A stretch of DNA of 64,000 nt. It comes from Convolutriloba macropyga. Lineage: Eukaryota. The translations under genes were made by a program, and so were the position numbers. The stretch is from the NCBI RefSeq assembly GCF_964194025.1, contig NC_134471.1, positions 38,068,001 through 38,132,000 of the forward strand, read 5' to 3'. Position 1 is the stretch's first letter; each line of letters begins with the position of its first letter. Below the pieces are notes generated by a model that did no database searches, was not told the DNA's origin, and was given only the letters and a program-made list of their open reading frames with translations. Positions 6,960-27,243 of this stretch are shown piece by piece.

Positions 6960-9506
6960 ATATGTTTCCCGGGGCTTCAATTTGTGCCCCTTAGTCAGTT
7001 TCAAATGTCAAGTTTTTTCCAATTGTTACAATTGTCACATCTGCAAATTATACGCCAAGAGCATTTGTTTGTCAGGCTGAAATGAGTTGTGAAAAAGCGC
7101 CAGTATGCTTTTGTGATAGTGTGTTTGTTTAATTTGCCTCCAAATTTTTGAATATTTCTATTTACAACGTTGTACAGTTGTTTCGTTCGGTGGAAGAAGT
7201 TTTCATCAGATTTGACTAGTCGGTTATTTTCGATTTTCAATTCACCTCTACAGTGTTGCCTTGTCCTCTCGTCTTCAAGGGTTTTAAAATTTGTCGGAAT
7301 GTCCAATTCATTACGTGTAATAGCTAGGAAGAGAAGAAGATCATGCAGTTCAACGTAGTGACAGAGTGGGAGGAGTTTTAGGCTAATGAGACGTTCTTTG
7401 TAACTTTGAAGTGAGTTTCCTAGAATCCATTTAGTAGACATGATCTGCACTTTTTCAATTTTGTACATGTTGGTGCGGTTTGGCAACCATGCTTGTGAGC
7501 AGTACGTCAAAATGGGAACAATATAACCAGTATAGCAGTTCATTTTGGTTGACGTTGAGCTGATTGTTGACATATTTCGTTTTATTTGGAAAAAGCACTG
7601 GTCGCTTTTTTCACTCTGTGGTCGCAGTTGCCTTGCCATGAGAGATTTGATGTTATTATTAAACCAAGGTCTTTTTGGGATTCAGTTGGTTTTACTTCCT
7701 GGCCACACATAGATGTCGTGAGATTACCTCTAACATTTAACAACTTGCATTTGTTTGCATTTAACTCCATTCCAGTCTCTCGGCACCAGTCTTCAATATT
7801 TTTTGCGCTTCTGTCCAGTTTTGCTTGATCATGAACGATGAACTTATAGTCGTCTGCAAATCCAAAACCTTCAATATCGGGGTTTGCATCTGGCAAGTCA
7901 TTTATAGAAATTAAGAACAGTAGTGGTCCAAGTATCGAACCTTGTGGGACTCCACTAGTTACGTTCTCCAAACTTGAATAACAATTTCCAATTTTAACAA
8001 ATTGTTTTCTATCTTCTAAATAAGAGTGAAAGTGTAATAATATATTTCCTCCGACATCAAAACTTTCGAGTTTTTTTTATGAGAAGGTGATGTGGTACTT
8101 TATCAAAAGCTTTTGCAAAATCTAAGTACAGGATACTACTGTCGTCCGACGAAATTGTGTCAAATTTGCGATATACTCTGTCAAGAAACAGTAGAAGCTG
8201 AGTGGTTGCCGATCTATTCTTTCGAAAGCGGAATTGATTTTTGTTTAATCTGTGACGACAATGATAAAATTTTTCGTCAGAAATCACTTTTTCAAAAATT
8301 TTGGACATACAAGAGAGTAAACTAATGGGTCTGCTTTGCTTCCCTCCTTATAGATGGGAGTTATTTGAATTATTTTCCAGATAGAAGGGAATTTTCTTTT
8401 ATTGGACATTGTTTGAAAAAGAAGGACGAGTGACTTGCTCAAAGTTGCTGAGCAAAATTTAAAAATTATGTTACCAAAGTTATCGGGTCCGTTTGACTTG
8501 TTGAGTTGTAGTTTCCTTGATATATCTGTTATCAGTTTTTCTGTTATATGCAGAGAATTAAGTTTTCTCCTCAAGACTGCTGGTTTGTAATCAACTTTGT
8601 CACTGTACACTTTTTGGAAGAAGGAGTCAAAAAGTTCTGCTTTGTGTTGATCGGTTCTAGCGCTCGTGTTTGCATAGTTTACAATGGGTGGTATGGAAGG
8701 ACTCTTTCTTATTGCCCGGAGATATTTTTGTATATTACTGAACCGTCGCCCTGCGAAAACTTCGGATTCAAAATTAGACTGATCTTTCTCCATTTCAATT
8801 GATATTTGTTTTTCAAGTTTCTTTATTTTGAGGCTCCTGCTCAGGTTCATTACCTGCCGTCGTTTTTTTTATTATTTTCCAGTTTCTTGATTAGATGGGA
8901 TGTTGATGGTGTTACCCACGGGGGAAGTGAAGCTCGATGCCGCGTGACTTTAGGAATGTTTGCTTCGAGGATCTTGTTTATCCATTTGTACCATTCTTGA
9001 ACCAGGACGTTCACATTGCTGTAGCAGTACGGATCAAAAGGTGATTTCATTATTTGCTCATTTAGGTGCTCCCAGTTTGCTCTTTTGAAAGCAAATTTGA
9101 CATCTCCAGCAGATGCGTGGGGATGGATGAACGTGCTCAAGTAAGTGCAGATTGGGATGTGATCAGAGCAAGGTTTTTGATTTGTGGAGTATTTAGAAGA
9201 AAGATTATTGTCCAAGTCGCAGCTTATAATTGGGTCGAGGGTGTTGACTAGGACTACATCAAGTTGTCTCTAAGCAATGTTTGAAAAATTTAATTCAAAC
9301 AACTTTTCAATGAATGCAGTCTCATAATCATCACTTGAGCTCATTGATTCCCAGTCAGTTTTGGAAAAATTTATGTCTCCCGTCAGTATCAAGTTTTCAC
9401 ATATCTGATTTGAGCGTGTTAATTCAATTTCATAAAGTAGGGTTGATAGTTGTGCAGATGACCATAGGAATGGACTTCCAGTGGGTGGATTGTAGACACA
9501 GCAGAT
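6960..9506 (-). mobile_element. 3' part of CR1-group (CR1/L2/Daphne-like) LINE ORF2, frameshifted; 5' end cut off by LTR of element X
   Basis: APE remnants (ILTGDINFS; SDHIPI) and RT motifs KSNGPD, YLDFAKAFDKVPH, SGVPQGSILGPLLF..INDLP, FADD, KDLG, Y...VPILTYCSQAW, SYKERL..LKLLPL. Confidence 0.85.
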
Positions 9507-10123
9507 TGTAATATCCGTGCACTGTCAACGGTTACGGTTTGGTTTGGATGTTATTCCTAAGCACTTTAAACCTCGGAGTTACTGAGGAAAATTTTCCAAG
9601 TTTCAGACTTGAATTTAATGGAGCAAATGTAAAAGTTCAATCAGTTTAATACAAAATTAGATCAATTGCTTGTAAATATTAGAAGGTTTGTGAAGATGAG
9701 AGATGTAAAGCAATTAAAGAGAGGCAGCTCGATTGTGTAAGGTTTAGGTTTGAATATGTTCTTTGGTTTTCAGTCCTATCAATGGTTAATTAATCTTAGG
9801 TTATTTTTACCCATTTTCGTTAATCTCCGTGGGATTTTCTCATAGTTATTTTCTACCGCATGGGTCCCTGTTAGTTAAACTAACAGATAACAGGTTTACC
9901 TGCTTGACGAATCCCGTCATGAACAAACATTCCTTGACATGTCCCGTCAAGATTAAATTATATGATGATTCCCATCATTATTTATGATGCTTTCTCTATA
10001 TTGTTAAAATCCGGTTTACTATTAGTAACCATCTCTTTTTGTTCTGCTTTTTGTTTATGAAAATTTCGAATTACGCGCTTAATATGTAATTTATGAGCAT
10101 GTCATACATTATGGTTCACTATA
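9507..10123 (-). repeat. 3' LTR of element X (617 bp)
   Basis: Direct repeat of 18099-18715 (offset 8592). One mismatch seen (AATATCCGT vs AATATACGT). Minus-strand termini TATAG...TTACA. Confidence 0.97.
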
Positions 10124-10136
10124 CTGCCTCCCTCTT
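10124..10136 (-). promoter_or_regulatory. Polypurine tract of element X (AAGAGGGAGGCAG)
   Basis: Purine-rich run immediately 5' of the 3' LTR on the minus strand. Confidence 0.85.
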
Positions 10137-10177
10137 AGAAAAATGTGAGTGTTCCACTCACTCACACAGCAAGAGTT

Positions 10178-11020
10178 TCAAATGTCCATTTTCGAGTTCA
10201 TATATTCTTGTGCTTTTTCAATGCCGTACTTGTCATAGATATTACGGGCCTCCTCGTCTTCCATAATTTTCTTTGCTTGAAGAATGATTTTGAACATGTC
10301 CTCACGACCACCCTTGTCCGGATGACAAAGCAGTGCTAACGTTTTGAAATGTTTCTGGATAGTACTCTTTGTGGCCCCCTGTGGCAGGAATAGAAGTTCA
10401 TAAAAGTTTGGAGGTCGACTGAACGGGCTCTGCGCATTGATCGCCTCCAGCCTCCTCTGTATGACCTTCTTTGAGGTTTGCTCTGTTTTTACTCTACCCC
10501 TCAGCTTTCTATTGTCTATCTCGGCATTCTCCAACTCCCGAGCTAAACACTCCCGCTCGTCCACCAGAGCGATACATTCCCTTGTTTTTGTTTCGGCTAC
10601 ATTTGTAACCTCCTCCAATTCTTTCTTCAATGTTTCCAACTGCCTTCTGCAGGACTCCCGCTGATTCCCAGCGTATTCAAGTTGCCGTTGGGTCTCCAGC
10701 AATTGATCACCTAATCTTTGACTTTCAAGTTTAAACTGCCGGAGCTCCTCTTCGAGCCGAGCCCCGGCTGTTCCCAGCATTTCGCTGTTGTCAATCTTCT
10801 TTTGTTGTTCCTCGATTCTGTGTTGCATCTCATTTAACTCATCAACGCTAATTGCGGCTCTATCCACTATATTGGGTGGTTGCAGATGCGTCAGTGGCAC
10901 CACGTACCTCTTGTTTGAGGTTACACCAACAATCCGATACACTTGTTGCCTGACTATTGACCTCACTTCGAACAACTCGGGTAGATAGTAGCAATAATCA
11001 CCGATTTTTGGTTCTGCCAT
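10178..11020 (-). CDS. ORF4 of element X: SH3-like N-terminus + coiled coil + C-terminal J-domain (DnaJ/Hsp40-type co-chaperone domain), 280 aa
   Basis: ATG-initiated and intact. aa 205-275 NFYELL..PQGATKSTIQKHFKTLALLCHPDKGG..DMFKIILQAKKIMEDEEARNIYDKYG follows the J-domain helix I-IV pattern with the HPD motif (10316-10324). aa ~55-195 is an E/Q/K/R/L-rich heptad region. Confidence 0.9.
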   Translation of the reverse strand: MAEPKIGDYCYYLPELFEVRSIVRQQVYRIVGVTSNKRYVVPLTHLQPPNIVDRAAISVDELNEMQHRIEEQQKKIDNSEMLGTAGARLEEELRQFKLESQRLGDQLLETQRQLEYAGNQRESCRRQLETLKKELEEVTNVAETKTRECIALVDERECLARELENAEIDNRKLRGRVKTEQTSKKVIQRRLEAINAQSPFSRPPNFYELLFLPQGATKSTIQKHFKTLALLCHPDKGGREDMFKIILQAKKIMEDEEARNIYDKYGIEKAQEYMNSKMDI

Positions 11021-11042
11021 TCCTACATATCATACACGTAAA

Positions 11043-13103
11043 TTAGTCTAATGTATCAATTTCAATTTCTGTCATATCTGGTACAGATTTTGCCTTTTTT
11101 GCTTTTATAACAACGATGTTTGTTTCACCGTCACACCGTTCAACTGTCCTTTTTCTTGTCAATTCCTGTTCCTTTGTACGTTGTTTTAGATAATGAAAAT
11201 AACCTAGTTCCCCCATTGGGTTAATGGGTTGCAGTGCAATTACAGGATTGGTGCCACTGCGTAGCATATCGATTGAAAAAAACACGCGTACCAAACAAAA
11301 TATGATTTTAGATCCAAAAAAAATAGTCATTAAACTGATGGTTATTTCCCTGGCCACATGCCAGATTTGTTTCATTTCATTACCCAAATATTCAAAAATC
11401 AGCAATTCATGCCACTGATTATTGTAATTTAAATCCGTGTTGAAATACTCTAGAGTCTCATGCTCATATAAACCTCCTTGTCCCAGGAAAACTTCTCTTC
11501 CTGTTATCGTCTTTCTCGAATGCCTTAACCTTTGGGCCCTTTTGCTAAGTTCCAGGTCCTTGTCATTGAAAAACCCTTCCATTGGCGCCGAAGTTGACCA
11601 ATTGACGTTAACTCTATAATTAGGCATAACATTGGGTTTTTCAATTAATTGTATCCTTCGCCCATATGTTATCCATGACCCATTCTGCAATTCAAGAGCG
11701 TTCGGGTACATGGGGTTGCAATTAATCAGTGTGAAATTTCTATAGAATACTCTAGAAATGGGGTCCATGTATCTAATTACTTCTGAAGTGTTGTCAGAAA
11801 ACACCCTAACTGGTACTTCCTCCGTACAAAACTGATTTTCGACAACATGTACGATTACTTTAGCGCACCTATGGACATATAGTATTCCTCCCGATCTTTC
11901 TGCGTGTGTACCCAGAGCGTTTTGTTGACTTAAGAAAATTTGGTGTGAATTTCCGTTAATTGATGTCGTTAGAATCATAGCTCTGTGCAGTTTTTCTATG
12001 TGACAATTTAATAACTCTATTTCTTTCAGGTTTTCAAACATGCCTCGAAAATCCCACACAAAAAGTTGATCGAGTTTTATGTCCCTGAGATCTGTCTCAG
12101 ATATATCTGTTGTTGAAAAATTTTGTTCTGTGGCCGTCAACTTTTCCGTTGTATAAAACAAATTTCTGTGGTTTGTTTCAAAAAGCAGAAAACTGTCTAT
12201 TTGTTTTGTCTTGTTTTTCAACTGGACAACTAAATTTCTTTTTCTGTCTAATTTGCTCGTCAAGTACTTTTTGTTTCCAGCGTGGACTAGTTTTGCTGTT
12301 ATCGAGTCTGAAAATTTAACGATCGTTAAGATGTTTGGTTTTTTGTCTTGGTCGAACAGATATTGTACTGAATCTATTTCAAATGTGTCTCCTTGATATA
12401 ACAAGGTCTGCTCCTGTTTCAAAGGGTCTTTAAAATATAACCATGTTCCTTCATTTGTTTCCCTAGTTTCAATGAACAAAGTCCCCATGAAAATTTCTGC
12501 ATTTATCATGATGTTACCTTTCTGTGTTTCGCCTTTTGGATTGATCCAATCCACGGGGTAGACATAATTCACTCCTTTCTCATTTCCGCCTTTCATGAAA
12601 GTTTTTGATATCTTCTGAACAAATTCAGCGTCGGTTCGGTCAATATTCATCTCGTTGAGGACTTCTTTGGGAGCATTGAATTCAAAATCACCAAGACCCG
12701 GTAACCGCGTTTTGTGTCCCTGCCATAGATTTTGACAGACTGACTCTTTTATTGGGTAAAACGTTGGAATTATTTGTGATTTTTCGTTTAAGTAAGTTGC
12801 GTCGTCATACCAACTACTTTTTTTCAGCACAGTTACCGTATATGCAGCCCTGTACATGCAGTATTTTAGTTTACTCATGCTGCTTTTGGCGTAGATCAGT
12901 CCTCCTTTGTTTACCTGCTCCTCATTTATATGTGAAGTTTCACATTTTGTAGGTTCCGTCATTGCAAATTTCTGCGTCTGTAGAATGTTCTCAAAATCAT
13001 ACCCCACAATCTCCAAGGATTGTGAAAAACCTAATATGCTAACCAACTGAAGAAGTTTCCAGTTCAGCTGCACGATCCAATGTGGGTTCCACGCACTCTG
13101 CAT
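11043..13103 (-). CDS. env: Envelope glycoprotein of element X, class III fusogen-like (chuvirus G / herpes gB-like), 686 aa
   Basis: Sits after pol. Signal peptide (LLQLVSILGFSQS), then VGYDF, conserved-type Cys spacing, and C..EK...G..AERSGGILYVHRC..V.V....CTEEVPV...YMDPISRV......C...YP. N-glycosylation sequons (NFS, NTS, NFT, NGS, NWS), C-terminal hydrophobic TM segment and basic tail. Confidence 0.85.
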   Translation of the reverse strand: MQSAWNPHWIVQLNWKLLQLVSILGFSQSLEIVGYDFENILQTQKFAMTEPTKCETSHINEEQVNKGGLIYAKSSMSKLKYCMYRAAYTVTVLKKSSWYDDATYLNEKSQIIPTFYPIKESVCQNLWQGHKTRLPGLGDFEFNAPKEVLNEMNIDRTDAEFVQKISKTFMKGGNEKGVNYVYPVDWINPKGETQKGNIMINAEIFMGTLFIETRETNEGTWLYFKDPLKQEQTLLYQGDTFEIDSVQYLFDQDKKPNILTIVKFSDSITAKLVHAGNKKYLTSKLDRKRNLVVQLKNKTKQIDSFLLFETNHRNLFYTTEKLTATEQNFSTTDISETDLRDIKLDQLFVWDFRGMFENLKEIELLNCHIEKLHRAMILTTSINGNSHQIFLSQQNALGTHAERSGGILYVHRCAKVIVHVVENQFCTEEVPVRVFSDNTSEVIRYMDPISRVFYRNFTLINCNPMYPNALELQNGSWITYGRRIQLIEKPNVMPNYRVNVNWSTSAPMEGFFNDKDLELSKRAQRLRHSRKTITGREVFLGQGGLYEHETLEYFNTDLNYNNQWHELLIFEYLGNEMKQIWHVAREITISLMTIFFGSKIIFCLVRVFFSIDMLRSGTNPVIALQPINPMGELGYFHYLKQRTKEQELTRKRTVERCDGETNIVVIKAKKAKSVPDMTEIEIDTLD

Positions 13104-13119
13104 TTTGTCGTATCACCTT

Positions 13120-16100
13120 TTAAAAAAATACATCATTATCAAATTTTTCATCTGAATCGTTATCCTTGAATAAAAAATAGTCTTTCAGTTTCCGTGGTCT
13201 TGTTATTCCCGACGCACTTCTTGTCTGATATCGTCGTTCGGTGACATTTTGCGAAGTAGAAGCCGTGCTCCTATTTGGAAATTCTTCGCCTTCACTCCTC
13301 TCGGATGTTGACACCAGACTATCCCGCTTCTGCTGTGTGGCTACTTTGGGCGCAGGTATCTTGGTGCTTCTGCTCTTATTGTTGGTGTTAGTATTTATTG
13401 ATTCTCTTGTACTCCCACCCATAGGTGTTTGAAACGATTCGTCTTTGACTGTCTCATTATGAGTTTCAGTATTAGGATTAATTTGACTAATATTTCCTTC
13501 AGGTTGAAATTCTCTTCTTTCTGTGTCATTCTGTTTTGGGGTCACCACTTCAATTTCCACAAAATCATTGTCCTCCGTAAGGTCGTTTTGTGTTATTTTC
13601 GGTTCAATCTTTCCCTTCTTAGGTTCTTTTTTATCGGTGGTAGCACTTCTACTGTTAAAACGTTTGAGTCGATCGTAGTGGACCTTCTGTTGTTTTTTTG
13701 TTTTCACATCCTCAATAACAAAGTTCAGATCGTTTATTATTTCACGTATTACCTGCGGTCCGCTGTAAAAGGATTTAAATTTCTTTGTCTGGCCAGTTTT
13801 TATTGTGGGGTTGAACACCATTACTAAATCACCTACTTCATATTGTGGTCCAAATGTGCTACGGTCATAGTAGGTTTTTTGTCTTTGTTGCTCCACATCC
13901 ATGCTTTCCCGTACCAGCTCATGGCACGTTTGTAGTTCATCTTTCAAGCAACCAACATAATCACTCAAAGTTGGGTAGATTTTGGTTTGTATTGTTTGAT
14001 ACATGCAATCAATCGGCAGCGCGCATGATCGTCCAAAAAGGAGGTAAAAGGGGCTGTACTTCGTAACAGAGTGAATTGATGATCTGTACGCCATCATTAC
14101 TAGCGGAAGGTAGTCGCTCCAGGTGTTGTGATGTTCACCCACGTATTTTGCAAGACTCTCTTCGATTGTGCGATTGGTGCGCTCTATCATTGCGTTTCCT
14201 TGAGGGTGATAAGCTGTTGTTGAAGTCCTGTTAATTCCCAGCTCTTTACACATGTTCTTGAAAAGATTCGACATAAAATTACTGCCCTTGTCGCTATGAA
14301 GATTTGCCGGACAACCAAACCTTGAAACCCATACATTTACAAAGGCCTTAGCGACCGTTGAAGCTTCTTGGTTGCTCATGGGAACTGCTTCATACCATTT
14401 TGTAAATTGATCTCCAATTAACAGAATGTATTTGTTTCCGCTGGACTCGGGTAAAGGTCCCATAATGTCTAAGGCAACTTGCCAGAACGGATGACTTGGT
14501 TTCCACGTTGTCAGACTGTGTATGTGTTTCTGGTGTGGAGATTTCTTTTGACAGCATTCTTCGCAAGAACTTACCCACTCATGGACATCTTTTTTCATCC
14601 CGGGCCAGTAGAATCGTTCTCGAACCCGATCAAATGTCTTGGCCATACCAAAGTGTCCGCAATGTTCATGAAGGAAAGGTAGAATTTCTTTTAGAAGTGA
14701 TCTCTGAATGACTATTTGTGTTAAGTTATTAATTTCGTCAATATGTTTCTGTCTCTTGATAAGATCATTTTCAATCCGTAAGTTTCTGAAATCAGTCCAA
14801 AGTTTCCACAGTGCCCTAGAGGCTCCTGCCATGTGTTTTCTTTGAGGGCGTTTCACGTTCTCAATCCAGTTTCTCAGTATAATGAGGTCGGCTGCATTTT
14901 TCTGATGTTCAACTAGTTGTTCAACAGATTTCCCTAGTCCAATGGACCAGATATTTTTTTCTTCCGTATTTATTTGGTTCACTTGATTGCAGTCTTTGAC
15001 TTGGTCTTCAGTCTGTGGAACTCTCGACAGACAGTCCGCGTGAGGGATCTTTTTTCCCGCTTCGTGTTTGATTTCAAAGTCAAACTGTCCGAGCTTTTCT
15101 ATCCACCGGGCCAATAATCCGTCTGGTTCCTTAAAACTATATAACCACGTGAGGGCCCTATGGTCAGTAACAATTAAAAATTTTTGTCCAAGAAGATAAT
15201 TTCTGAAGTGTTGAGTAAAATAAACTATTGCAAAAAGTTCTCGTTTTGTCGCAGAATAGTTTCGTTGACTTTTGCTGAGCGTTTTGCTAGCGTATGCAAT
15301 AACTCTTTCACCCCATTGTTGTCTTTGGGAAATAATTGCGCCAATTCCAAACAAAGAGGCGTCGGTGGTTAACGTATAGGGATCCGTGTCATTCGGATAA
15401 CCCAAAATCGGTGCTTTCTGTAAAGCTTGTTTTAGTTGTTCAACTGCTGATTCGCATTCCTTGCTCCAAGTAAAACGTTCTTTTTTGTTTAATAGCTTAT
15501 AAAGCGGCTCTGCTATTTTTCCGAAATCTTGTATGAATCTTCTGTAAAAACCTACTAGTCCTAATATAGCTCTCAATTCTTTTATTGTTCGTGGGCTTTT
15601 CATTTTACTGACTGCCGCTACTTTCTCCGGATCCACTTCTACGCCTTTATTTGATACAATGTGTCCCAGGAAATGAATTTTTTCCTGAAAAAACCTGCAT
15701 TTTGAGCCTTTTATTTTCAATCCAGCATCTTTAAGTCGCCCAAGTACGAGATCTAGGCGGTTGAGATGCTCCTCAAAGGATCTACCGAAGATGATTATGT
15801 CATCCAGGTATACTAGAGCCACTTCATAGGAGAGTCCCGACATGATCAATTCCATTAAATTTTGAAAAGCTCCTGGCGCTGACGCCAAACCCATGGGTAG
15901 TCTCTTCCATTTGTAGAGTCCCATTGGAGTTACAAAGGCTGTCACGTTCTGTGACTCTTCATCAAGTGCCATTTGAAAATATCCCGATGTCAAATCGATA
16001 TTGGAAAAGTAACAATTTCCATCTAGAGAATCAATAACGTCATTTATTCTTGGTAGCGGCCAACTGGTTTTCTCGATTTGTTTATTCAAACCTCTGTAAT

Positions 16101-17712
16101 CTACAACTAGTCTGTAGCTACCATCTTTCTTCTTCACCAATATTGATGGTGCTGCCCAATACGAATGGGTTGGTTCAATTAATTTTGCATCCTCTAGATC
16201 TTCGACAATTTTTTTCATTGCTTTTCTTTTGTCAAAACTCATACTGCAATAACTTCTTCTGAACGGCTGTGCATCTTTGTTGAGTTTAATCTGGTGTTTA
16301 ATTTTGTCACAATATCCTAAGTCATTTGAGTTTCGTGAGAAGACTTGTTGATGTCTCGTGAACAATTCCTGTACTTTCTCTTTCTGCTGGTCATTTAGTT
16401 TAGAACCTTCCAAGTTTGCGTGTTTTCCCTTTTGAAAAGTTTCTAATGTTTTTGGCTTATTTTGATTTGTGAAAATTCCATTCACAACTAAGTTCTGTTT
16501 GTTTTCAAAGTAAGTTCCCACTTTAGTGCTTTTATACACGGTTACTGGTGCGTCCGTTAGATTTAACACTTTTATCAAACTCCAACCATCTTCCATTGAT
16601 ATCATACAGGCGGCTAAAAGCAAACCAGTCTTTAGTTCAAAATCTCCAATTGCTTCCACTAATCCTTCCACTCCCGGAATTTCTTCTCCGTTTTCATCAG
16701 CTAATCTAATTTTCATTAGATTTTCGTTTTTACTCTGTATATAAGTGTTTTGTCCCGCAATTGCAAAAACTTGAACACCTTGCGTTTTCTCTGTGGTGAG
16801 CGGTATTGAAACTTTAAAGTGACTGCTATATAGTTTCTCTTCGTGTAAGTTCAATACGCATTTATTGGTTTTCAGGAAATCAATTCCCAGTAGACATTCT
16901 ATACCTTCGTCTGCCGTTATCACAAACTCTTGTTCGACCTCCGGTAGTCTGGGTTGCATCTGTACCAAAAGCGTTACTCTGCCTATTATTTTGACAGCTG
17001 AGTTATTGGCTGTTAACACTCGTTTTGTGTATGTTTGTACAATTCCCGGTTTTCCCAGTTTTTCGTATGTGGACCAGCTCAAAAGCGATATACTACTTCC
17101 ACTGTCTATTAATCCAACGCATCTGTTCCCATGAAGTATGATTTCTGCGTTTAGACATTTAATTGTGTTTGTCGAACAAACTCTAATGACATTGCAGTTC
17201 TCGGTGGTTTTCTTTTTAAAAGGGCAGTTTCTTTTCAAGTGTTGGGAACTTCCACATAGGAAACAATTTCGACAATTCCTCGAAAGGTGTCCTTCTTGTC
17301 CACAAGCTCTACACTTGAAACCCTGCCTGTCGTTCCTCCTAGACGGTTCCTCTCTTCCAAAAGATCTGTCTCGGTGACTAGGTCCTGGCGTTGGAAATCG
17401 CCGCCGATCGTTAAACCCACGATCTTGTTGCTGTCCTCTGTCACGTCTGTCGTCACCCCAGCGTCCCCGGGAACCACTTCGCTCCCTAGATTGGTTTCGA
17501 CGGTTTTCTCGCTGTTTGTCATCTACTGACAATTGGTTCACAAGCTTGGTGACGGCCTCCACTAAATCTTTTGTTTCATCTCGTCTAATTACCGCAACTT
17601 TTGGTGTTTGCTCTTCCTCCTCTATTCTTGTTACAGCTTCCAGATGCAATGCTCTTTCCAAAACTGTTTCAATTTTCATATCAGTCCTATCAATGGAATT
17701 ACGCAGTTGCAA
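13120..17712 (-). CDS. pol: Gag(C-terminal part/NC)-Pol polyprotein of element X: two CCHC knuckles, aspartic protease, RT, RNase H, integrase; gag capsid N-terminus missing
   Basis: CRACGQEGHLSRNC and CFLCGSSQHLKRNC; LIDSGSS; RLVVDYRGLN, DLTSGYFQ, MGLASAP, YLDD; TDAS..G, TDH; H..GH...C..C, LDIMGP, SDKGSNF, ERTNRT; GP-type C-terminal module. The frame is open for 1530 aa but begins right after a TGA with TTG (first ATG at about 17679). Confidence 0.95.
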   Translation of the reverse strand: MQLRNSIDRTDMKIETVLERALHLEAVTRIEEEEQTPKVAVIRRDETKDLVEAVTKLVNQLSVDDKQRENRRNQSRERSGSRGRWGDDRRDRGQQQDRGFNDRRRFPTPGPSHRDRSFGREEPSRRNDRQGFKCRACGQEGHLSRNCRNCFLCGSSQHLKRNCPFKKKTTENCNVIRVCSTNTIKCLNAEIILHGNRCVGLIDSGSSISLLSWSTYEKLGKPGIVQTYTKRVLTANNSAVKIIGRVTLLVQMQPRLPEVEQEFVITADEGIECLLGIDFLKTNKCVLNLHEEKLYSSHFKVSIPLTTEKTQGVQVFAIAGQNTYIQSKNENLMKIRLADENGEEIPGVEGLVEAIGDFELKTGLLLAACMISMEDGWSLIKVLNLTDAPVTVYKSTKVGTYFENKQNLVVNGIFTNQNKPKTLETFQKGKHANLEGSKLNDQQKEKVQELFTRHQQVFSRNSNDLGYCDKIKHQIKLNKDAQPFRRSYCSMSFDKRKAMKKIVEDLEDAKLIEPTHSYWAAPSILVKKKDGSYRLVVDYRGLNKQIEKTSWPLPRINDVIDSLDGNCYFSNIDLTSGYFQMALDEESQNVTAFVTPMGLYKWKRLPMGLASAPGAFQNLMELIMSGLSYEVALVYLDDIIIFGRSFEEHLNRLDLVLGRLKDAGLKIKGSKCRFFQEKIHFLGHIVSNKGVEVDPEKVAAVSKMKSPRTIKELRAILGLVGFYRRFIQDFGKIAEPLYKLLNKKERFTWSKECESAVEQLKQALQKAPILGYPNDTDPYTLTTDASLFGIGAIISQRQQWGERVIAYASKTLSKSQRNYSATKRELFAIVYFTQHFRNYLLGQKFLIVTDHRALTWLYSFKEPDGLLARWIEKLGQFDFEIKHEAGKKIPHADCLSRVPQTEDQVKDCNQVNQINTEEKNIWSIGLGKSVEQLVEHQKNAADLIILRNWIENVKRPQRKHMAGASRALWKLWTDFRNLRIENDLIKRQKHIDEINNLTQIVIQRSLLKEILPFLHEHCGHFGMAKTFDRVRERFYWPGMKKDVHEWVSSCEECCQKKSPHQKHIHSLTTWKPSHPFWQVALDIMGPLPESSGNKYILLIGDQFTKWYEAVPMSNQEASTVAKAFVNVWVSRFGCPANLHSDKGSNFMSNLFKNMCKELGINRTSTTAYHPQGNAMIERTNRTIEESLAKYVGEHHNTWSDYLPLVMMAYRSSIHSVTKYSPFYLLFGRSCALPIDCMYQTIQTKIYPTLSDYVGCLKDELQTCHELVRESMDVEQQRQKTYYDRSTFGPQYEVGDLVMVFNPTIKTGQTKKFKSFYSGPQVIREIINDLNFVIEDVKTKKQQKVHYDRLKRFNSRSATTDKKEPKKGKIEPKITQNDLTEDNDFVEIEVVTPKQNDTERREFQPEGNISQINPNTETHNETVKDESFQTPMGGSTRESINTNTNNKSRSTKIPAPKVATQQKRDSLVSTSERSEGEEFPNRSTASTSQNVTERRYQTRSASGITRPRKLKDYFLFKDNDSDEKFDNDVFF

Positions 17713-18085
17713 TCAGTTTCAATTACAAACGACAAAAACAAGAAAGAACTCTTTATTTCTACTCACTTGGTATGATGCGGTCTTTCCTCACAGAGAAGTT
17801 TCTGTCTCCACCAACGAGTAAAAGATAGCACCACGCGAGTAAATTCCCACTTGCTTTCCTGCGACTGATGTCCTGTGACTGATGTCCCCTGCTGTGGCTT
17901 CTGCAATTGACTCCCACACAAATTGGTGGAAATGGGTGGTAATTGAAAGATTTGATATCCCAAATCTTTGTGTTAGTATCGAGAAAAATTCGATTCTCGG
18001 AGTTTTTGGGGTTAAAGTGCTTTTTATTTGCGTCTCCCTACCGACAAATTTGTTAAAGATTTTAAAATGTTAACTTTCCTTTAAA

Positions 18086-18097
18086 TCTCTGTCGCCA
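18086..18097 (-). promoter_or_regulatory. Primer-binding site of element X (TGGCGACAGAGA; tRNA-Arg/Ser-like)
   Basis: ...ATTACA|C|TGGCGACAGAG directly after the 5' LTR. tRNA identity inferred only from TGGCGAC. Confidence 0.8.
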
Positions 18098-18098
18098 G

Positions 18099-18715
18099 TG
18101 TAATATACGTGCACTGTCAACGGTTACGGTTTGGTTTGGATGTTATTCCTAAGCACTTTAAACCTCGGAGTTACTGAGGAAAATTTTCCAAGTTTCAGAC
18201 TTGAATTTAATGGAGCAAATGTAAAAGTTCAATCAGTTTAATACAAAATTAGATCAATTGCTTGTAAATATTAGAAGGTTTGTGAAGATGAGAGATGTAA
18301 AGCAATTAAAGAGAGGCAGCTCGATTGTGTAAGGTTTAGGTTTGAATATGTTCTTTGGTTTTCAGTCCTATCAATGGTTAATTAATCTTAGGTTATTTTT
18401 ACCCATTTTCGTTAATCTCCGTGGGATTTTCTCATAGTTATTTTCTACCGCATGGGTCCCTGTTAGTTAAACTAACAGATAACAGGTTTACCTGCTTGAC
18501 GAATCCCGTCATGAACAAACATTCCTTGACATGTCCCGTCAAGATTAAATTATATGATGATTCCCATCATTATTTATGATGCTTTCTCTATATTGTTAAA
18601 ATCCGGTTTACTATTAGTAACCATCTCTTTTTGTTCTGCTTTTTGTTTATGAAAATTTCGAATTACGCGCTTAATATGTAATTTATGAGCATGTCATACA
18701 TTATGGTTCACTATA
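18099..18715 (-). repeat. 5' LTR of element X (617 bp)
   Basis: Direct repeat of 9507-10123, followed by the PBS. Confidence 0.97.
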
Positions 18716-21264
18716 GTATGCAACCAATATTACAACCATTATATAACCTCCTACACAAAGAAAACGATTTCAAATGGACGAAAGAACATCAACAAATTTT
18801 TGAACAAATGAAAAGAACCATAACACACCAATTAGAACTAACAATGCCAGATACTACAAAACCACTCCATATTATCAAAGATGCATCAAACACAGGGATC
18901 AGAGCGGCATTACTACAAAAATATCCAACTGAAAGAAAAATGAAATTAGTATCAGCAAATTCCAGAATATTCACACCTATCGAAATGCGACTATCAACAT
19001 TAATCAGAGAATGCTCAGCAATAATTTTTGCTCTAACAGTATGAATTTTTACTAACCGTTTCAAACCACCCAATAGTATTATTCACAGATCATAAAACCA
19101 TCATTTATCTATTTACTCAAAAGAACAAACCAAATCATAGAGTTTATAGATTCCAATTAATATTAATGAAATTCCCAAATTTACACATAATTTGGACAGA
19201 AGGAAAGAACCTAGCCCTCCCTGACCTTCTAAGCAGAACAATAGACGAAGAACATTTCACAAAAACACTAGATATAACTGTAGAAAGACCAGAAAACATA
19301 AAATTTTTCCTCGCAAAAACACCATTTACAAGCAATCTAGAATGCAAATACAGCACATGCAACAATACCAATGACAAAAATACAGAAAAAACACATTACC
19401 CAGTATTAACCAACATACATAATAACTATTTCGAAATAAATATCGATAAAAATGAATATCACACAATCTCATACGAGAAGTATAATACAGAAACAAAAAC
19501 AAATCTAATACCAAAATATAAACCCAAAACAAAAAACTGGCAATCGCCAATTGTAGAAAAAGATGACCTAATCATTGAGAAAAATCAAAAAGGACCGTAC
19601 ACAACACCTCAGATTGATAAATAACATAAAAACAAAACAAAAAACAAATTACGAAAATGTAAGAATTTCAGACATTTTCTATGATAACAAAAATAACTGA
19701 AAGCTTAATCAAAGAGACCCAAATCTTAGATCCGGTACTTCAAAAAGTGAAAATGTGGAAGAAACATAACAATAAACCATACTCAGTAACAATGGAAATA
19801 CGTGGAAACAAAGGAATATTTGCATATTTTCGCAAATTCAAATCCATCATAATTGATGACAACTCCGGTATCATAAAAATTGTAATCAGCATTCACAAAA
19901 AATCAATACAAAGAATCTGTCTGCCATTAACACTATTACTATGTACTTTTTATAACAACCATTGCATCAACCTAGTAGGTCACACAGGCCTTGAAAAAAC
20001 AAAAAGAATTATAATGGACAAATATTATTTCCCAAATCTTACAATTTGGATAAAAATACTGATAGCGGATTGCATACAATGCCAAACAAACAAAGTATTT
20101 GCTAACACAAAAACAAAAAGTAAGCAAGAACAGCTTGCACCAACAAAAAAATATATCAACGAATTGATAATGATTGACACAAAAGGACCTATTCACCCAA
20201 AATCTGAAGGAAACAACTACATTTTTGTCATAGTGGACGCATTTTCACATTAAGTAACGATAATGTGTGCGCCGAAAAATAATGCACATTATGCATATAC
20301 AGCACTATTCGAACATTGGTTTATGAAATTCGGACTACCCCAAGAATTTAGATCAGATAACGGATCGGAATACATTAACACTGAGTTAACACATTTATGT
20401 AACTACTTTGAAATTAAATTTAAACCAAGTACAACATATGCACCCTGTACGAACGGTCTAGTAGAATGAACAAACAGAATAATTGGACAATTCATAAGAA
20501 CACTACTAGATGAAAAGTATCATAATTGGTCACGGAAAGCAAAATTCTTCCCATATGCATACAGCACAGAATACCAAACACAACTAGGCATGTCACCATG
20601 TGAAGTTGTTTCCAACCAAAAGCCAAGGAAACCTACAAAAATAAAACTTGGAACAACTAAAGATGAAATGGGAAATTGTAATTCAACAGAGAAAAGTGCA
20701 TCTAACACGCAGCCAGGACATACTCATCTAGAAAAACAATTTAATCATCCAAAAATTGCAGAATTACAAAAAGGAATATTTGTCAAATGGTTCCCTGATA
20801 AAGAAAAATATTATAATGACACATATCAAACAATAGCAAAAATCCTACAGAACAGAAAAAAACTAACAGATGAAATGAATCTAAGATTCAGAACGGCAAA
20901 ACCGCTTGAGAAGAATACTTTTGTATTAGTGTCAAATCAACAACAAATTGACGGAGTATCCAAAAAAACTGTTACCCCTGTAAACAGGACCATATCTAAT
21001 CATAGATAAACCTACAGAAACAACATACATATTAAAGGATAACAATAAAGAACAGATTACAATCCACAGAAATCACATTGTACCATATTATCCAAAAGAA
21101 AAACATATTAAATAGAATTACAAAACTACCTACTCACAAATGAAATCCCAACATTAAAACAACCAAATATAACAACTACAACTAAATTAAACATAAAACA
21201 AACTGACAACGAACATACACATCAATACAATCTTCGCAAAAGGAAGATATCACTACAAAATTAA
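18716..21264 (+). pseudogene. pol: Y pol remnant: RT connection, RNase H, integrase
   Basis: LQPLYNLL..FKWT, DASNTG, SANSR..REC.AI.FAL, TDHK, EGKNLALPDLLSR, H..VGHTG..C..C, IDTKGP, VDAFSH, SDNGSEY, NGLVE, GPY and YNLR. Several stops and frameshifts. Begins abruptly at the X LTR. Confidence 0.9.
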
Positions 21265-21884
21265 TCAAGCATTAACCCTAATAATACTAATCATAATATT
21301 ATTAATAATAATAACACTATTTTATATTTTCTTTCTAAATGCTAATAGTATTAGATTATTCAACATATTGTACTATTCAAGATTATATCAGATATTATAC
21401 TCTGAAATTCTTCTGATTCTACTGCCTATCTATTATACATCTTACTAATTTTTTAACGTACAATCAATACTTCTACTACTTTCAGCATATTAAGTATCTA
21501 AACTAGTCTCTTTACTAGTCTGAAACAATTCAGTTTTCTACTGCTTTCGAAATATTACACATTGCTCTTATAAAGATTTCTAATAGCACACCCTAACCCG
21601 AACCTTGTGTGGATACTACCGAAAACATTAAAACACAAAATCTATATTAACAAATGAAACATCAATATTATGAATATGACTGAAAGTAAAATGAGTAAAA
21701 AAAACTAAAAGGTGTTAACATTCACCTAACCTCTAAATCATATAAGCAAATATCCATTAATTAAACACAAAATTATGAATAGACATAAAAGTCACTAGAC
21801 ATTATTATACATCAGTGTTCAATAAATACCCTTGGAAACAGACAAAATTTGATACATACCACCTTAAGTTTTAACACCTTCTAG

Positions 21885-23370
21885 TGGGATAAGTTATAAA
21901 AACAACATAAATATAAAGGGATTGTACTGTTTGAACATGTAACCACAAACTCCAACACTTTTGTAACCAAGTCATCAAGGTCCATTGTCACTACTGTCCA
22001 TCGACAAACACCACCTCTGAACTGACACACATTCAGCTATAATCACACATTGTCATTGATAAAACAAAGTCAAATAACAAACATTCAAAATAACAAATAA
22101 AATATCCCAACAGGATATACTAATACAAATGGGTATTGATTGTAGCCCTTGAACCAATCACCAATGAATGGAAATAGGTAATTTCATATAAACAAATAAC
22201 AAATAAACAATACAATCAAAACACACACGGGTTTTATTTTTGATGTTCACAGGCTTGGAACTGGAATAGACGTTAAGAGACTGTCGATATTAAACAATAA
22301 ACAATGAAATCAAAATAACAAATTCAAACAAAATTGAAATCAAAATCACAAACAAGTTCAAATAACAATATCCTCTGTAAAACGTATGAGGATTCACGGA
22401 ATGGGATAGACATTTTGTGGATGCCAATATTATGACAAATGAAATTCATATAAAACATTTATGAAAATAACATCAAAAGAACAAGTAATAAACAGACAAA
22501 TAATAATAACGTAAAAGTTAACAAACAGATAAAAAAAATATAGACAAAAGTTAACACGGGGAAACACAATGTGGAAGCTAAAAATAAAGAAAAACAAATA
22601 ATTATAAACGGTAAAAAATAGTAACTTCCTTTTTTCAATAACTTCCTCCATTTAGGTAACTTCCTATTTCACGAACAGATAACTAAACAGAACGACTAAA
22701 AGATGTATAACAATTCAATAAGCGTAACAATGTAATACGCGTAACGCTCCAATACGTGTTACAATCCAGTAACGTGTAATAATCCAGCGTATTTTAACCA
22801 GGGCATTTCTAACAAGTGAGCAACGGCAGGACAGCACAATACCTAAAACACAAGAAATTTAGTTCACATCGATTACTCATCGGTCATACGACCTCTGGCT
22901 CATAACACTAACCAAACAACCTCTAACGCGTAACATCAGTCAAACGCCCTTCGGCTAAATAGACATCTCAACTACATAGACATTTCTGCTAAATAGACAA
23001 TTAGGCTAAATGGAAATTCCACAGTGAAATTTTACCTGAATTATACGTCGCTATCCACCTACGTCATACGAATAAAACGGACGTTAAAAACATGCTATCA
23101 TTAGCAGGAAAAAGACCTCATTAGCATCCTCATTATAGAAAATATAAAGATTACCAAAGGTAACAAGGACCATAATAAAGGGAAGAAACAAACAAATCGA
23201 TATTTTCATCAGTAAGATAAGGGGAGGAATGAACAATTTACAGGGACTTACCGTTCCCTTGCAGACGCAATTAGTAACAAACATTGGGATAAGTTATAAA
23301 AACAACATATATATAAAGGGATTGTACTGTTTGAACATGTAACCACAAACTCCAACACTTTTGTAACCAA
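21885..23370. repeat. Two copies of an ~86-bp direct repeat (21885-21970 and 23285-23370)
   Basis: TGGGATAAGTTATAAAAACAACATA...CCAACACTTTTGTAACCAA, one mismatch seen. Confidence 0.85.
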
Positions 23371-24505
23371 ACCAATTAACATATTCAACGCCATGAACGT
23401 AATGGAGATTACCATGATAGATCTACAAAGATCATTTCGCAGTAGAAGTAAACACGTCATCTTCACACCACTTCAATCATACACATAAAAACGTTCGACA
23501 TGACGTCGATACAAAACAACTAATTAACAGTTGCAGTTTGCAAACCAACCATCTACTTGACATTTGCACCATTTGCACCAAATACCACATTGGTAGTTCA
23601 TTAACGATATACACCAACGACGTCACCATCCACTTCAACTATCTACATCAATTATACCATTGATTAAAAACATACTTGATGTTATATGTTGATAAGTGAC
23701 AAAAACAACAAAGTAACTAATTACTACCTTTAACATACCAAGACAAAAGTACGTCACACTACCATCAAACATACCAATTACATACCAATTACATACCAAC
23801 ATACCAATTACAAGGGAAAAACAATCATAACAACAAAGCTGAAGTAACTTCAGAAAGAATCTTATAATTCGAAAACTCAGAATTCAAAAGTCTAATTAGA
23901 CCCAGTAAATTAGTAAAATTGGCAACTTCAAGAAACAAGAAAAGAACACGGAAGGTATGCAAATGCCAAGAATATTATAGAGGCAACAGACAGTTGAGTT
24001 AAAAATCAAAACTCCGATTTTGTCTCGTAAAAATCACAACCTCAGCTATATTTGAAAAATCTGAAAATTTCAGTTAAACTGATACACAAAAACACAAATT
24101 CAAATGTTCAGTGAGAAAAAATTTCTAACTTCTACTCAAAACTTCATTTTCTGAATTCACAAACTCAAATACAAACAAAACTTCATTTTTATTTCAATTC
24201 TAAAGTCAAAACCTCATCTCATTTCCCCAGCCAAAAAATAATACTGCAATTCTCCAATTTCATACTCTCTCAATCTAGATAAACTAATTTGAGAAACCTC
24301 GAAATCTTTATTGAGAAATTAAAACTAAGAGAATATATCTTCTTCAATTAACTGTTTTATCATCAAAATTTCAGCCAAAAACGATTCAACAGTACCGGGT
24401 AATCTGAATTATTTTAATTTCATTTCTGACAGACTAACCCATCATTACAGTAAACATTGTATTGAACAACCACCTATGCTATCGGTGTAAGAATTTATAA
24501 AATCG

Positions 24506-24889
24506 TTGAATAGAAATCAACTTTGCAAAAAAATAATTGTTCAAATAGACGATTATATTGAACTTGAATATCCACCAGATTGTCATATCCATTTCGACGA
24601 CGACAGTATTAAACTCACAAACTGTACAATCTTACCTAAAAACTATCTACTTCTAATAGAAGGAGAAACAGAAACTGGACAAGAAGTAAAACTCTTTTGG
24701 GAAGAAAAACATTTTGAAATACTAAAGAACACGACAACGTGTACTGAAACAATTACAGAATTCGAAAAAAAACTAAAACAACAAATTAGCACAGACAAGT
24801 GTGTCAATATAAACAAATTACACACAGTTTTTCTCGTAGTTTGCAAAAAAGACGCTGTAACATTGTCAGACGACAAGTTGGAAAACTAA
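24506..24889 (+). pseudogene. Y accessory ORF remnant, unknown function
   Basis: 127-codon sense-strand frame with protein-like composition; no recognisable motif. Confidence 0.35.
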
Positions 24890-25814
24890 ATAAGTAATGA
24901 TACCTATCTTTGTTATCGTTGTATATCATTAACATAAAATAAAGACACTATTGAAACTATCATATTTTCATAGTGCGACACCGTTACGTGTCAGTTACAG
25001 TAGCAAATAACTGTCACTCTTCAGTGAAGCATTATAAATCATTGCCATTAGATAAAGTTTAACACTACACTAAAAAATACTAAAATGAACATCAGAAAAC
25101 AAAAAAAACAGTTTCAACGATTGATTTTCATAGCGCACTAATAGCAACGTATTTATTATTATCTAAAATAATATTTTTCTTAACTATCTTTCTCGTACCG
25201 TGTAAAGTAGTTATTTCAACATATCTAGCTGTAGTAACAATATACGAAGTTATTAGAAACCGTAGAGTCATCGATGCCAGTCCACCGGTTCAATAATAAA
25301 ACCAATGCATGACGTACGTTCTGATATATTACATTTATGCAAGTCTAATTTAGATATAATAGAACTGGAAATCTTTATATTTATTAAAATTCAACAATAA
25401 TTTATTTCTTCTTACGCATGTGTTTACTGTTAATAGAATATTTTATAAATCCATAAAAATTGATCCTTTACCAGATATAGAAGAATCAATATAATATACA
25501 CTACACTCACAAAAGTTTTTATCTACAAATAAGATTTCCTGAAAATTCACCATTATACGGCAACATTATAATTTATCAATTACAACTCAGACTTGAAAAT
25601 AACGAAATTTGGGTACAAAATCTAGGAGCACAAACACAACAACCAGAACAAGAATTAGCAGCTCTAATACTCCTCTCACCACCATTCGTCCAAGTCCCAC
25701 CACGCGGATCTGGCTCAGAAGCTTAAAAAATAATTTGCAAAAATTGCGTCGTCTAACAATAGTCAGCGTAACAATAATAATCAAGAAACACCACATCATA
25801 GCGAAGTTACATAT

Positions 25815-26914
25815 TTGACAAATATACCAACTTTACCAGAAATTGATGATAATCCCGGAAACGAAAATCCATATACCGTACGGCGAGACCGCCCGGAAAG
25901 AAGAGATCTCTTAAGAGCACGACGTCGATCTTCGCTATCATTCCCAACACAAGATTCAACACTCGTTTCATATGGTTCAACAGATATAGAATCTAACATA
26001 ATAAGACCTATAGAAGCAGGAACCTCAGAACCACCAAGTAGAACAGGAACACCAACACTTCACAAATTTAGTTTAAGTTCACCAAACGATCATTTTGGTA
26101 ATAGTAACATCCAAACACCCACACAATCTGAATTGAGGGCAAACTCATTTCTACCACCTACATTCCAACAACGACAAGATTTTAATTTTGTTCAAGAACA
26201 TTTTCGAGAACAGCCATTACACTCACCTAATAGTTCCCTTTGTCAGCAACCACAATCCGTAAGTGGTAATACAAAACCACAAAGATCAAATCAAACATTC
26301 TCATCGAATACCTCTGTAAGCGTACCACACGTTGAACTAACAAATTCCCTACAGCCACCAAGAAGTACATAATGAGAAGTACAGCTTTATCCCCCTACAC
26401 AACACATTGAGAAGTACAGTTTTATCCCCATCATCCTTTATACCAGAAATAAGATTACCATCAAGCCATCCTGGTAGAACAAGATCAACACCAATAGTTA
26501 ACCCTAACCCACCTACTAAAAGTAGGATTAATGAACACACATATCTCTTCGCATTAGATCATAAAACTTGGAATCCACCTTCACCGTTATACGGACCCAC
26601 TAATCTTGGTGATACACTTACTAATTGGTCAAGAAGTAGACTTACAAATACTTTAAATCTTACGTAACGCAGCGCTTAACGTTTTAGCAAAACAATCTCT
26701 CCAACTTAAATTTAACACAACAATTAAATACGACACCCTCTTTAATCACCCGTTCCAGGCAACTACACCATCAATAGTAACAACCACACTTCCAGCACCG
26801 TTCATCTGCATTGACTTTATATACAAATTTGACAGATATACAAAACAAAGGTTAGCATTTGCAACATTCTACAATCCACACACTGGTCTGTCATACACAT
26901 GTCGATTCAACTAA
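25815..26914 (+). pseudogene. Y accessory ORF remnant A (S/P/T-rich N-terminus + small globular C-terminus)
   Basis: ORFs 25815-26372 and 26407-26667 plus a shifted frame (RNAALNVLAKQSLQLKF...GLSYTCRFN) appear to be one broken gene. Confidence 0.45.
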
Positions 26915-27243
26915 AAGCTATTATTTTCATATTATTTTTAATAATAATATATATTTACATGCAAATAGAAGCAAAAATACAATTACAACAAAGACTAAAA
27001 TATGATGCTAGACAACGCATTAAAGATCGTATAAATGAAAGTATGGGGAAAAAATCCAACAATTTCAAAACAAAAACAAAACAAAAAAAGATAAAAGTAA
27101 TTTCCATACGATTGACCAACAAAAATACAAGAACCTTCGACACCATGTATTTAACAATAATATTAAAGTTAACACTAATTCGCAACAATTCAATTATACT
27201 AAAATTGAAGAACTCGATTACTTTAAAAACAGTCCATCGGTAA

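Follow-up and report, generated by a model that had tools for sequence, protein, structure and literature searches.

Ty3/gypsy retrotransposons that carry an envelope gene (env) have been catalogued across metazoans under the operational name "errantiviruses", and those of beetles, Hymenoptera, Polyneoptera and copepods include elements whose env resembles the glycoproteins of chuviruses and herpesvirus gB; the gene lists given for them comprise gag, pol and env only, and DnaJ, J-domain and chaperone go unmentioned (PMC13524379). BEL/Pao elements of mosquitoes have likewise captured a chuvirus glycoprotein (PMC7642597), and long terminal repeat (LTR) retrotransposons of bdelloid rotifers carry captured third open reading frames (ORF3s) that encode a GDSL lipase, a DEDDy exonuclease, or coiled-coil or transmembrane products (PMC5408684). 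Here we analyze a 64,000-nucleotide stretch of the Convolutriloba macropyga genome (NCBI RefSeq assembly GCF_964194025.1, contig NC_134471.1, positions 38,068,001 to 38,132,000 of the forward strand), hereafter the window, in whose coordinates positions are given unless a locus is named. Its minus strand holds a 9,209-bp LTR element (9507..18715), identified as Ty3/gypsy-type by its LTR pair and Pfam domain order, the interior of which is filled by three ORFs in the order gag-pol, env and ORF4. The last of these (10178..11020, minus strand) begins with ATG and encodes a 280-residue accessory protein with a J domain. The element is of a known type of env-bearing retroelement and carries a new conserved accessory gene.

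Accessory genes are a hallmark of complex vertebrate retroviruses. J proteins dock on Hsp70 through their HPD loop and helix II and trigger ATP hydrolysis. Class C members rely on their other domains to direct Hsp70 to a single site or client; an example is auxilin, a recruiter of Hsc70 to clathrin lattices whose J domain is C-terminal. In the T antigens of polyomaviruses, an N-terminal, virus-encoded J domain harnesses host Hsc70. To our knowledge, chaperone hijacking by virus-encoded J domains has until now been known from polyomaviruses, giant viruses and phages. In the full-text literature we came across no errantivirus, member of the Metaviridae or LTR retrotransposon reported to have a J domain or DnaJ, Repbase and GyDB lying outside the scope of that search. 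An earlier note on this DNA had put the element forward as the best candidate for an undescribed system, and no prior account of a retroelement bearing a J domain came to light in that literature; the pairing of a chuvirus/gB env with a gypsy pol, on the other hand, is already known (PMC13524379).

ORF4 is a separate gene placed between env and the polypurine tract (PPT) with its adjoining 3' LTR, as the earlier note had held. Its ATG (11018-11020) follows the env stop codon TAA (11043-11045) after a spacer of 22 nt, and 41 nt separate its own stop codon (10178-10180) from the PPT; position, start codon, length and both spacings agree exactly with what that note had described (about 40 nt in the case of the PPT). 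Its description of the ORF as intact can be kept for ORF4 and env, both of which are open, and does not extend to the whole element, since gag is truncated by one deletion.

The J domain of ORF4 (residues 205-279; 10184..10408, minus strand) is genuine, being recognized by Pfam, by sequence matches in the PDB and by Foldseek. The Pfam hidden Markov model (HMM) for DnaJ, PF00226, matches residues 205-263 with E=5e-14 and 52.6 bits, above the gathering threshold of 27.8 that is also passed by both homologs on a related contig (L005) and by the one on another (L008). The HPD codons (residues 233-235; 10316..10324, minus strand) lie in the sequence HPDKGG, within the loop that joins helices II and III, and the basic residues of helix II are present as well. 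In a PDB sequence search ORF4 has 44 matches at E<=0.01, 42 of which are J domains of cellular Hsp40 proteins, the best being those of Sis1, DNAJB, DNAJA1 and DNAJC5 (E ~2e-8). An AlphaFold2 model, built from an alignment of 18 family members and with a mean predicted local distance difference test score (pLDDT) of 89, places helices at residues 206-209, 218-232, 240-254 and 256-265 in the four-helix J fold, and Foldseek superposes this part on the solved J domains of Sis1, DNAJB1, DNAJA1 and Ydj1 with a root-mean-square deviation (rmsd) of 1.1-2.7 A. The complete C-terminal J domain with HPDKGG that had been read from the letters alone is therefore confirmed by profile, PDB and fold comparison. 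Neither Pfam nor NCBIfam finds a glycine/phenylalanine-rich (G/F) region, a zinc finger or a DnaJ C-terminal domain in ORF4; the NCBIfam DnaJ models match by their first ~75 positions only, with scores far under their cutoffs. Given the C-terminal J domain and the lack of G/F or client-binding domains, ORF4 is assigned to class C (type III) rather than to class A or B DnaJ proteins. This also favors the earlier view that ORF4 is not a retrocopied host DnaJA/B gene, as does the absence of any near-identical cellular gene among 1.84 billion representative proteins.

In the predicted structure ORF4 consists of three modules, the J domain being preceded by a Tudor/PWWP-like beta-barrel and a helix of ~140 residues. 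The barrel (residues 8-46; 10883..10999, minus strand) has its strands at residues 9-42 in the full model and reaches a pLDDT of 90-97 when the N-terminal 60 residues are modeled alone. It shows, as a predicted model, the SH3-like five-stranded architecture of the Royal family, and Foldseek matches it in the PDB to PWWP domains, SMN, TDRD3, SPF30, TDRD1 and the second extended Tudor domain of Krimper (eTud2), with TM scores of 0.65-0.72 and an rmsd of 1.7-2.9 A. Compared with known Royal-family domains, then, the predicted barrel superposes on SMN, TDRD3, SPF30 and PWWP but lacks a sequence-profile match to them. Five aromatic, three arginine and two glycine positions of the barrel are conserved across lineages; one of the arginines is invariant and the remaining positions are kept in 9-10 of the 10-11 aligned rows. 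The helix (residues 59-197; 10430..10846, minus strand) is predicted to be single, uninterrupted and of coiled-coil type (AlphaFold2 pLDDT 90-98), and in the alignment its length differs between lineages. A PDB match of residues 82-138 to BAP31 (E ~1e-5) and matches to SMC proteins were judged to reflect coiled-coil composition rather than homology. No signal peptide or membrane segment was found in ORF4, and between lineages its three modules can be aligned with 25-38% identity.

Among cellular J proteins, ORF4 is most readily compared with class C proteins such as auxilin and GAK, with which it shares a C-terminal J domain behind a specialized targeting module, the lack of G/F and client-binding domains, and the presumed logic of directing Hsp70 to a single assembly. 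It differs from them in having no PTEN-like or clathrin-binding region, its targeting part comprising a small barrel and a long coiled coil, and neither the PDB nor the representative-protein searches revealed a sequence relationship to auxilin or GAK beyond the J domain. A specific likeness to polyomavirus T antigens, suggested in the earlier note, found no support past the general J fold: T antigens are absent from the 44 PDB sequence matches and from the 50 matches listed by either the PDB or the viral fold search. The J domain is moreover C-terminal in ORF4 and N-terminal in the T antigens, so that the resemblance is one of functional analogy only. The matches listed from the viral structure library are exclusively J domains of phages and giant viruses, found through the J fold, with no retroelement protein among them; the DnaJ-like proteins of those groups belong to DNA viruses of protists and bacteria and are without the barrel and coiled coil. 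With the rotifer elements the present clade has in common a lineage-specific extra ORF behind pol or env, which in the rotifers is thought to be expressed from a spliced message, whereas the gene content is different and no J domain is reported among the rotifer genes (PMC5408684).

ORF4 is a constant, selected accessory gene of an env-carrying Ty3/gypsy clade and not a passenger. A single-sequence query returned 118 clusters of ORF4-related sequences and a profile search at least 238 at E<=1e-10, 120 of which were listed, all of them from the ENA. The ORF4 of the window belongs to a cluster of 81 members and its env to one of 202. All copies whose contigs were looked up, including loci L001, L003 and L013, lie in the window's own assembly (ERZ25071359), and L001 and L003 have the order gag, pol, env, J. 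Comparison of the window copy with three others gave a ratio of nonsynonymous to synonymous substitution rates (dN/dS) of 0.21-0.25 for ORF4, 0.21-0.42 for env and 0.24-0.41 for gag-pol, values that overestimate omega because neutral decay after insertion is included. The similarity of the three ranges indicates that ORF4 has been as constrained as the genes for replication. Thirteen clusters of genomic copies approach full length. Of the 86 clusters that cover the motif, 61 keep HPD and 25 have lost it, while every undegraded foreign lineage retains it. Within the same copies, env and pol have higher stop counts than ORF4. Two of the points on which the earlier note had made its case depend, recurrence of ORF4 beyond this copy and a dN/dS well away from 1, thus came out in its favor: the gene is found in at least 238 clusters, with the env-then-J order also seen in relatives, and evolves like pol and env.

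Beyond the family, relatives were sought by an exhaustive HMMER search of the 1.84 billion representative proteins followed by reading of the contigs concerned. Full-length relatives of ORF4 were recovered at 29-38% identity, and every one of them with readable context sits after env or inside a retroelement remnant. The order gag-pol-env-J occurs in four diverged full-length lineages (pol ~50-56%, J 28-32% identical), and env followed by J in further fragments, amounting to 11 samples in all, Tara Oceans metagenomes included. One lineage is represented by L005 (ERZ1742291); this 10-kb contig overlaps itself at its ends, as expected of an LTR-collapsed assembly, and encodes gag, pol, env (PF24664) and then two J ORFs. 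Another comes from five Tara Oceans/marine assemblies (L007-L011), of which L007 carries gag, pol, env and J, the short L008 has J directly after env, and J is present on L009-L011; these five contigs show at most five base differences in the J ORF, all synonymous. Identity to the window element is 53-56% for the pol of L005 and L007, 32-34% for their env and, over its whole length, 28-32% for J. A third lineage, L094 (ERZ25074608), has gag-pol-env followed by two J ORFs, and L013 is a second, older and decayed family in the window's own genome with the same order and a pol ~50% identical. Remnants with env fragments before J were found on L095 (ERZ25071366) and L012 (ERZ25071281), and in Logan run SRR31017057 a 458-residue ORF precedes J. 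Judging from the Tara matches and from what is published about envs of this type, at least one lineage may have marine arthropods as hosts, which we offer as a lead only.

The tandem J genes lie at 8258-8962 and 9211-9942 of L005 and at 9998-10606 and 10847-11729 of L094. In L005 the two (J1 and J2) are 27% identical to one another, both intact and both with HPD, and because L094 shares the layout the duplication appears to be old, with both copies retained. Two paralog types can be distinguished, J1 grouping with the proteins P0188 and P0341 and J2 with P0161. In L005, U3 repeats beside a purine run resembling a PPT separate J1 from J2, as though J2 had arrived through recombination with another element's end. 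An HMM of the J family finds no second J ORF within the window.

No cellular protein combining barrel, helix and J domain occurs among the 1.84 billion representatives; the nearest cellular matches are ordinary J domains, ~45-52% identical over ~65 residues. Eighty gypsy loci from JGI metagenomes, with pol at most 48% identical, contain neither the J family nor this env, and since the env is missing too they are uninformative about env-bearing relatives lacking J. The pol alignment likewise matched none of the IMG/VR viral contigs scanned. One further candidate, P0138 (679 residues, 114 bits), has six J domains and a locus without match to gag, pol or env, and was rejected as a family member; it is encoded at 10001-12040 of the unrelated contig L006 (ERZ27257279), where a neighboring gene at 16473-17966 has two J domains.

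ORF4 is probably translated from a spliced subgenomic mRNA of its own with the acceptor right before the first codon, a reading of the sequence that we hold with moderate confidence. The 22-nt spacer between env and ORF4 (11021..11042, minus strand) contains a candidate 3' splice site, an AG 2 nt ahead of the ATG. In L005 an AG likewise stands 2 nt before the J1 ATG, and another, after a pyrimidine tract, immediately before that of J2. The J ORF of the Tara lineage has no in-frame ATG upstream of the conserved barrel, so that an upstream exon would have to supply its initiator, and a long pyrimidine tract with AG ends 2 nt before its first conserved codon. These features have the appearance of an acceptor site serving a subgenomic mRNA.

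From these observations we propose that ORF4 is a selected accessory gene, probably expressed from a spliced mRNA, whose product would act as a class C J adaptor that recruits Hsp70 to a target held by the barrel; we assign this reading a probability of about 0.72, a figure from which the choice of target is excluded. The N-terminal Tudor/PWWP-like barrel would bind the target and the ~140-residue helix, most likely a coiled-coil dimer, would serve as a spacer. The HPD loop of the J domain would dock on host Hsp70/Hsc70 and set off ATP hydrolysis, upon which Hsp70 would clamp onto and remodel whatever the barrel holds. That ORF4 recruits Hsp70 at all is likely, to judge from the homology of its J domain. 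As for the target, we would place the element's own capsid first, small-RNA silencing factors next, then chromatin or the intasome and finally the env tail. By analogy with the design of auxilin, a lattice binder joined to a C-terminal J domain, we tentatively prefer the assembly of the element's own Gag/capsid, such that Hsp70 might drive the assembly or uncoating of particles that use the neighboring env and pass from cell to cell.

Several observations weigh against this proposal. The Foldseek E-values of the barrel are weak (5e-3 to 7e-2) for a fold that is very common, and no Pfam Tudor or PWWP model matches it. Alignment of the barrel profile by hhalign to those of the element's gag, pol and env gave probabilities below 1%; the barrel hence has no detectable origin inside the element, a null result that speaks neither for nor against binding to Gag. 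No convincing splice donor was found in L005 or L007 with a crude consensus matrix. Pairwise dN/dS between genomic copies blends selected changes with neutral changes that followed insertion. Finally, the window copy lacks part of gag and so cannot by itself show ORF4 acting with its own Gag.

The alternatives differ in what ORF4 would do for the element, if anything. It would be a mere passenger if it were a piece of a cellular J gene, or had been taken up together with env from an RNA-virus donor, and did not serve the element. J domains are abundant in cells and LTR elements do capture foreign ORFs (PMC5408684); ORF4 is always found beside a captured env, making joint acquisition possible, and many genomic copies have decayed, with the HPD losses noted above. 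Such decay is nevertheless normal for all genes of the element, env and pol having more stops in the same copies, and against a passenger stand the retention of an open, HPD-containing frame where pol identity has dropped to ~50-56%, duplication with both copies kept in two lineages, and a dN/dS matching that of pol and env. The full architecture has no cellular homolog, and the viral library matches are generic J domains only. The gene order in relatives and the dN/dS values have already largely refuted this explanation, which we regard as very improbable. Closer to the env gene itself, ORF4 could bring cytosolic Hsp70 to the tail of the class III glycoprotein for trafficking, incorporation into particles or cell-cell fusion. 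In the loci read, ORF4 occurs only behind an env of PF24664 type, the 80 distant gypsy loci without ORF4 also lack this env, and the env has a cytoplasmic tail of ~75 residues. Such a role is improbable, however, as ORF4 has no signal peptide or membrane segment, hhalign gives no link between barrel and env tail, and the co-occurrence may reflect the shared ancestry of one clade.

Two further alternatives turn on what the barrel might read. Argonaute loading needs Hsc70/Hsp90 with a J protein, and PIWI proteins are bound by Tudor domains, which read their methylated N-termini. ORF4 could accordingly be imagined as a counter-defense adaptor whose barrel reads methyl-arginine or methyl-lysine on silencing factors such as PIWI-clade Argonautes, or which competes for the Hsp70/Hsp90 that load small RNAs, blunting silencing by PIWI-interacting RNAs (piRNAs) or by the RNA-induced silencing complex. 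The best structural neighbors of the barrel do include the methyl-arginine readers SMN, SPF30, TDRD3, TDRD1 and Krimper eTud2, at TM 0.65-0.72, and the conservation of five aromatic positions is what an aromatic cage would require. Equally good scores come from PWWP and SH3 folds, however, within the weak fold statistics and without a Tudor match at the sequence level, the aromatics may be mere core residues, and the strict linkage to env is explained no less well by a function in the particle or the infection cycle; we think this alternative unlikely. Reader modules also have precedents in integration: chromatin-reader modules occur in Ty3/gypsy integrases, as in the chromodomains of chromoviruses, and lentiviral integrase is tethered through a PWWP domain. 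A Royal-family barrel reading histone marks or DNA could thus direct Hsp70 to disassemble the post-integration intasome, or tether pre-integration complexes. The top Foldseek match is in fact a DNA-bound PWWP domain, with the PWWP domains of HDGF and HRP-2 and the Tudor domain of PHF19 among the neighbors, and of the three conserved barrel arginines the two that are not invariant are kept in 10 of 11 rows. ORF4 is nonetheless a separate protein not fused to integrase, hhalign finds no similarity of the barrel to the C-terminus of the element's integrase, and the same weak fold statistics apply, all of which leaves help at chromatin or integration quite unlikely. Going beyond the class C adaptor that we prefer, one may picture an old clade with a gene of complex-retrovirus type, a dimeric reader-plus-J adaptor aiming Hsp70 either at methyl-arginine-marked PIWI or small-RNA factors, as an anti-piRNA weapon, or at the element's own capsid, as an uncoating factor, and since duplicated and sub-functionalized; we consider this broader picture doubtful.

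The element that carries ORF4 has the hallmarks of Ty3/gypsy, with direct LTRs and adjoining primer-binding site (PBS) and PPT. The 5' LTR (18099..18715) and 3' LTR (9507..10123), both of 617 nt and on the minus strand, differ by one mismatch in 617 bases, and their near identity points to a very recent origin of the window copy. A PBS-like run starting with TGG (18085..18097, minus strand) begins 1 nt past the 5' LTR, and a 13-nt PPT (10124..10136, minus strand) abuts the 3' LTR; in L005 a comparable purine run precedes the start of the LTR. The 13 PBS-like bases are identical to positions 1291-1303 of the Tara element L007, despite the deep divergence of the proteins. A short perfect hairpin with a 6-bp stem and a 5-nt loop lies between the ORF4 stop codon and the PPT (10150-10166, minus strand). 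In U3, a palindromic motif GACGGG...GTC occurs twice, 30 nt apart, in each LTR (18495-18542 and 9903-9950); palindromic repeats with the core ACGGG..(C)GT form a tandem array of three 54-nt units in L005 (9039-9200) and of two 51-nt units in the Tara element (L007 846-947; also L008 2100-2200). Kept across lineages with pol only ~55% identical, these repeats are candidate enhancer or transcription-factor sites.

The gag-pol ORF (13120..17712, minus strand; 1530 residues) encodes a CCHC knuckle followed by aspartyl protease, reverse transcriptase, RNase H as well as integrase, recognized by Pfam at residues 193-279, 526-686, 749-877 and 1003-1170, an order characteristic of Ty3/gypsy (Metaviridae). 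Relative to other copies, one deletion has removed the N-terminal portion of gag; the Gag proteins of L005 and L007 accordingly match the window copy by their C-terminal half only, and other copies of the family over near full length. The 686-residue env (11043..13103, minus strand) is a fusion glycoprotein of Monjiviricetes/chuvirus type, that is gB-like and of class III, matching PF24664 with E=1.8e-14. Its translation has an N-terminal hydrophobic, signal-like segment, a C-terminal membrane anchor and the cytoplasmic tail mentioned above, and it is 32-41% identical to the env proteins of L004, L005 and L007. It is not of the baculovirus-F/paramyxovirus-F type of strict errantiviruses (the Drosophila gypsy group), matching PF24664 instead, and the window element falls in the gB-type env group described previously (PMC13524379). 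Like the members of that group, it combines LTRs, PBS and PPT with the order gag, protease-reverse transcriptase-RNase H-integrase pol and PF24664-type env, and is multi-copy and young; the present clade differs by adding a fourth conserved gene after env, and a fourth and fifth in some lineages.

No target-site duplication was found at the window element, the bases on its two sides being different, and its flanks (9490-9506 and 18716-18730) are different repeats. The 5' flank is a plus-strand RNase H/integrase remnant: what is left of a different LTR retroelement at 18727-20712, with RNase H and the zinc-binding domain of an integrase (23-30% identity to the pol of the window element), directly abuts the 5' LTR. 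On the 3' side are unrelated minus-strand ORFs. Probably either the locus was rearranged, recombination between copies being one possible route, or the copy is a derivative formed by deletion, in which case the evidence suggests that it moved in trans.

Elsewhere, the window consists mostly of repeats and has no Rfam match. Two plus-strand ORFs at 27308-29098 have sub-threshold matches to PF24664 (E 1e-4 and 9e-6), without BLAST similarity to the element's env and with no J ORF close by; they may come from a second, decayed element with an env or from a viral glycoprotein of endogenous origin. A related gypsy element begins at 62045-64000 (plus strand) and is cut by the end of the window, its gag being ~30-59% identical to those of L005 and L007 and the start of its protease present. 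Positions 20001-32000 show a strong, sustained strand asymmetry unlike the rest of the window, with a GC skew of ~-0.2 and an AT skew of ~+0.2 to +0.27.

As far as records could be found, no J-domain gene had been known from a retroelement before ORF4, which would show that J-domain chaperone hijacking arose independently in reverse-transcribing elements. The small reader-like barrel provides a handle for asking where in the retroelement cycle, or in what host defense, remodeling by Hsp70 is needed. The clade is present in marine plankton and other marine samples, and standard screens for gag, pol and env would annotate its members incompletely. Invertebrate env-bearing Ty3/gypsy elements, described as gag-pol-env only, thereby gain a conserved, selected and sometimes duplicated fourth gene.

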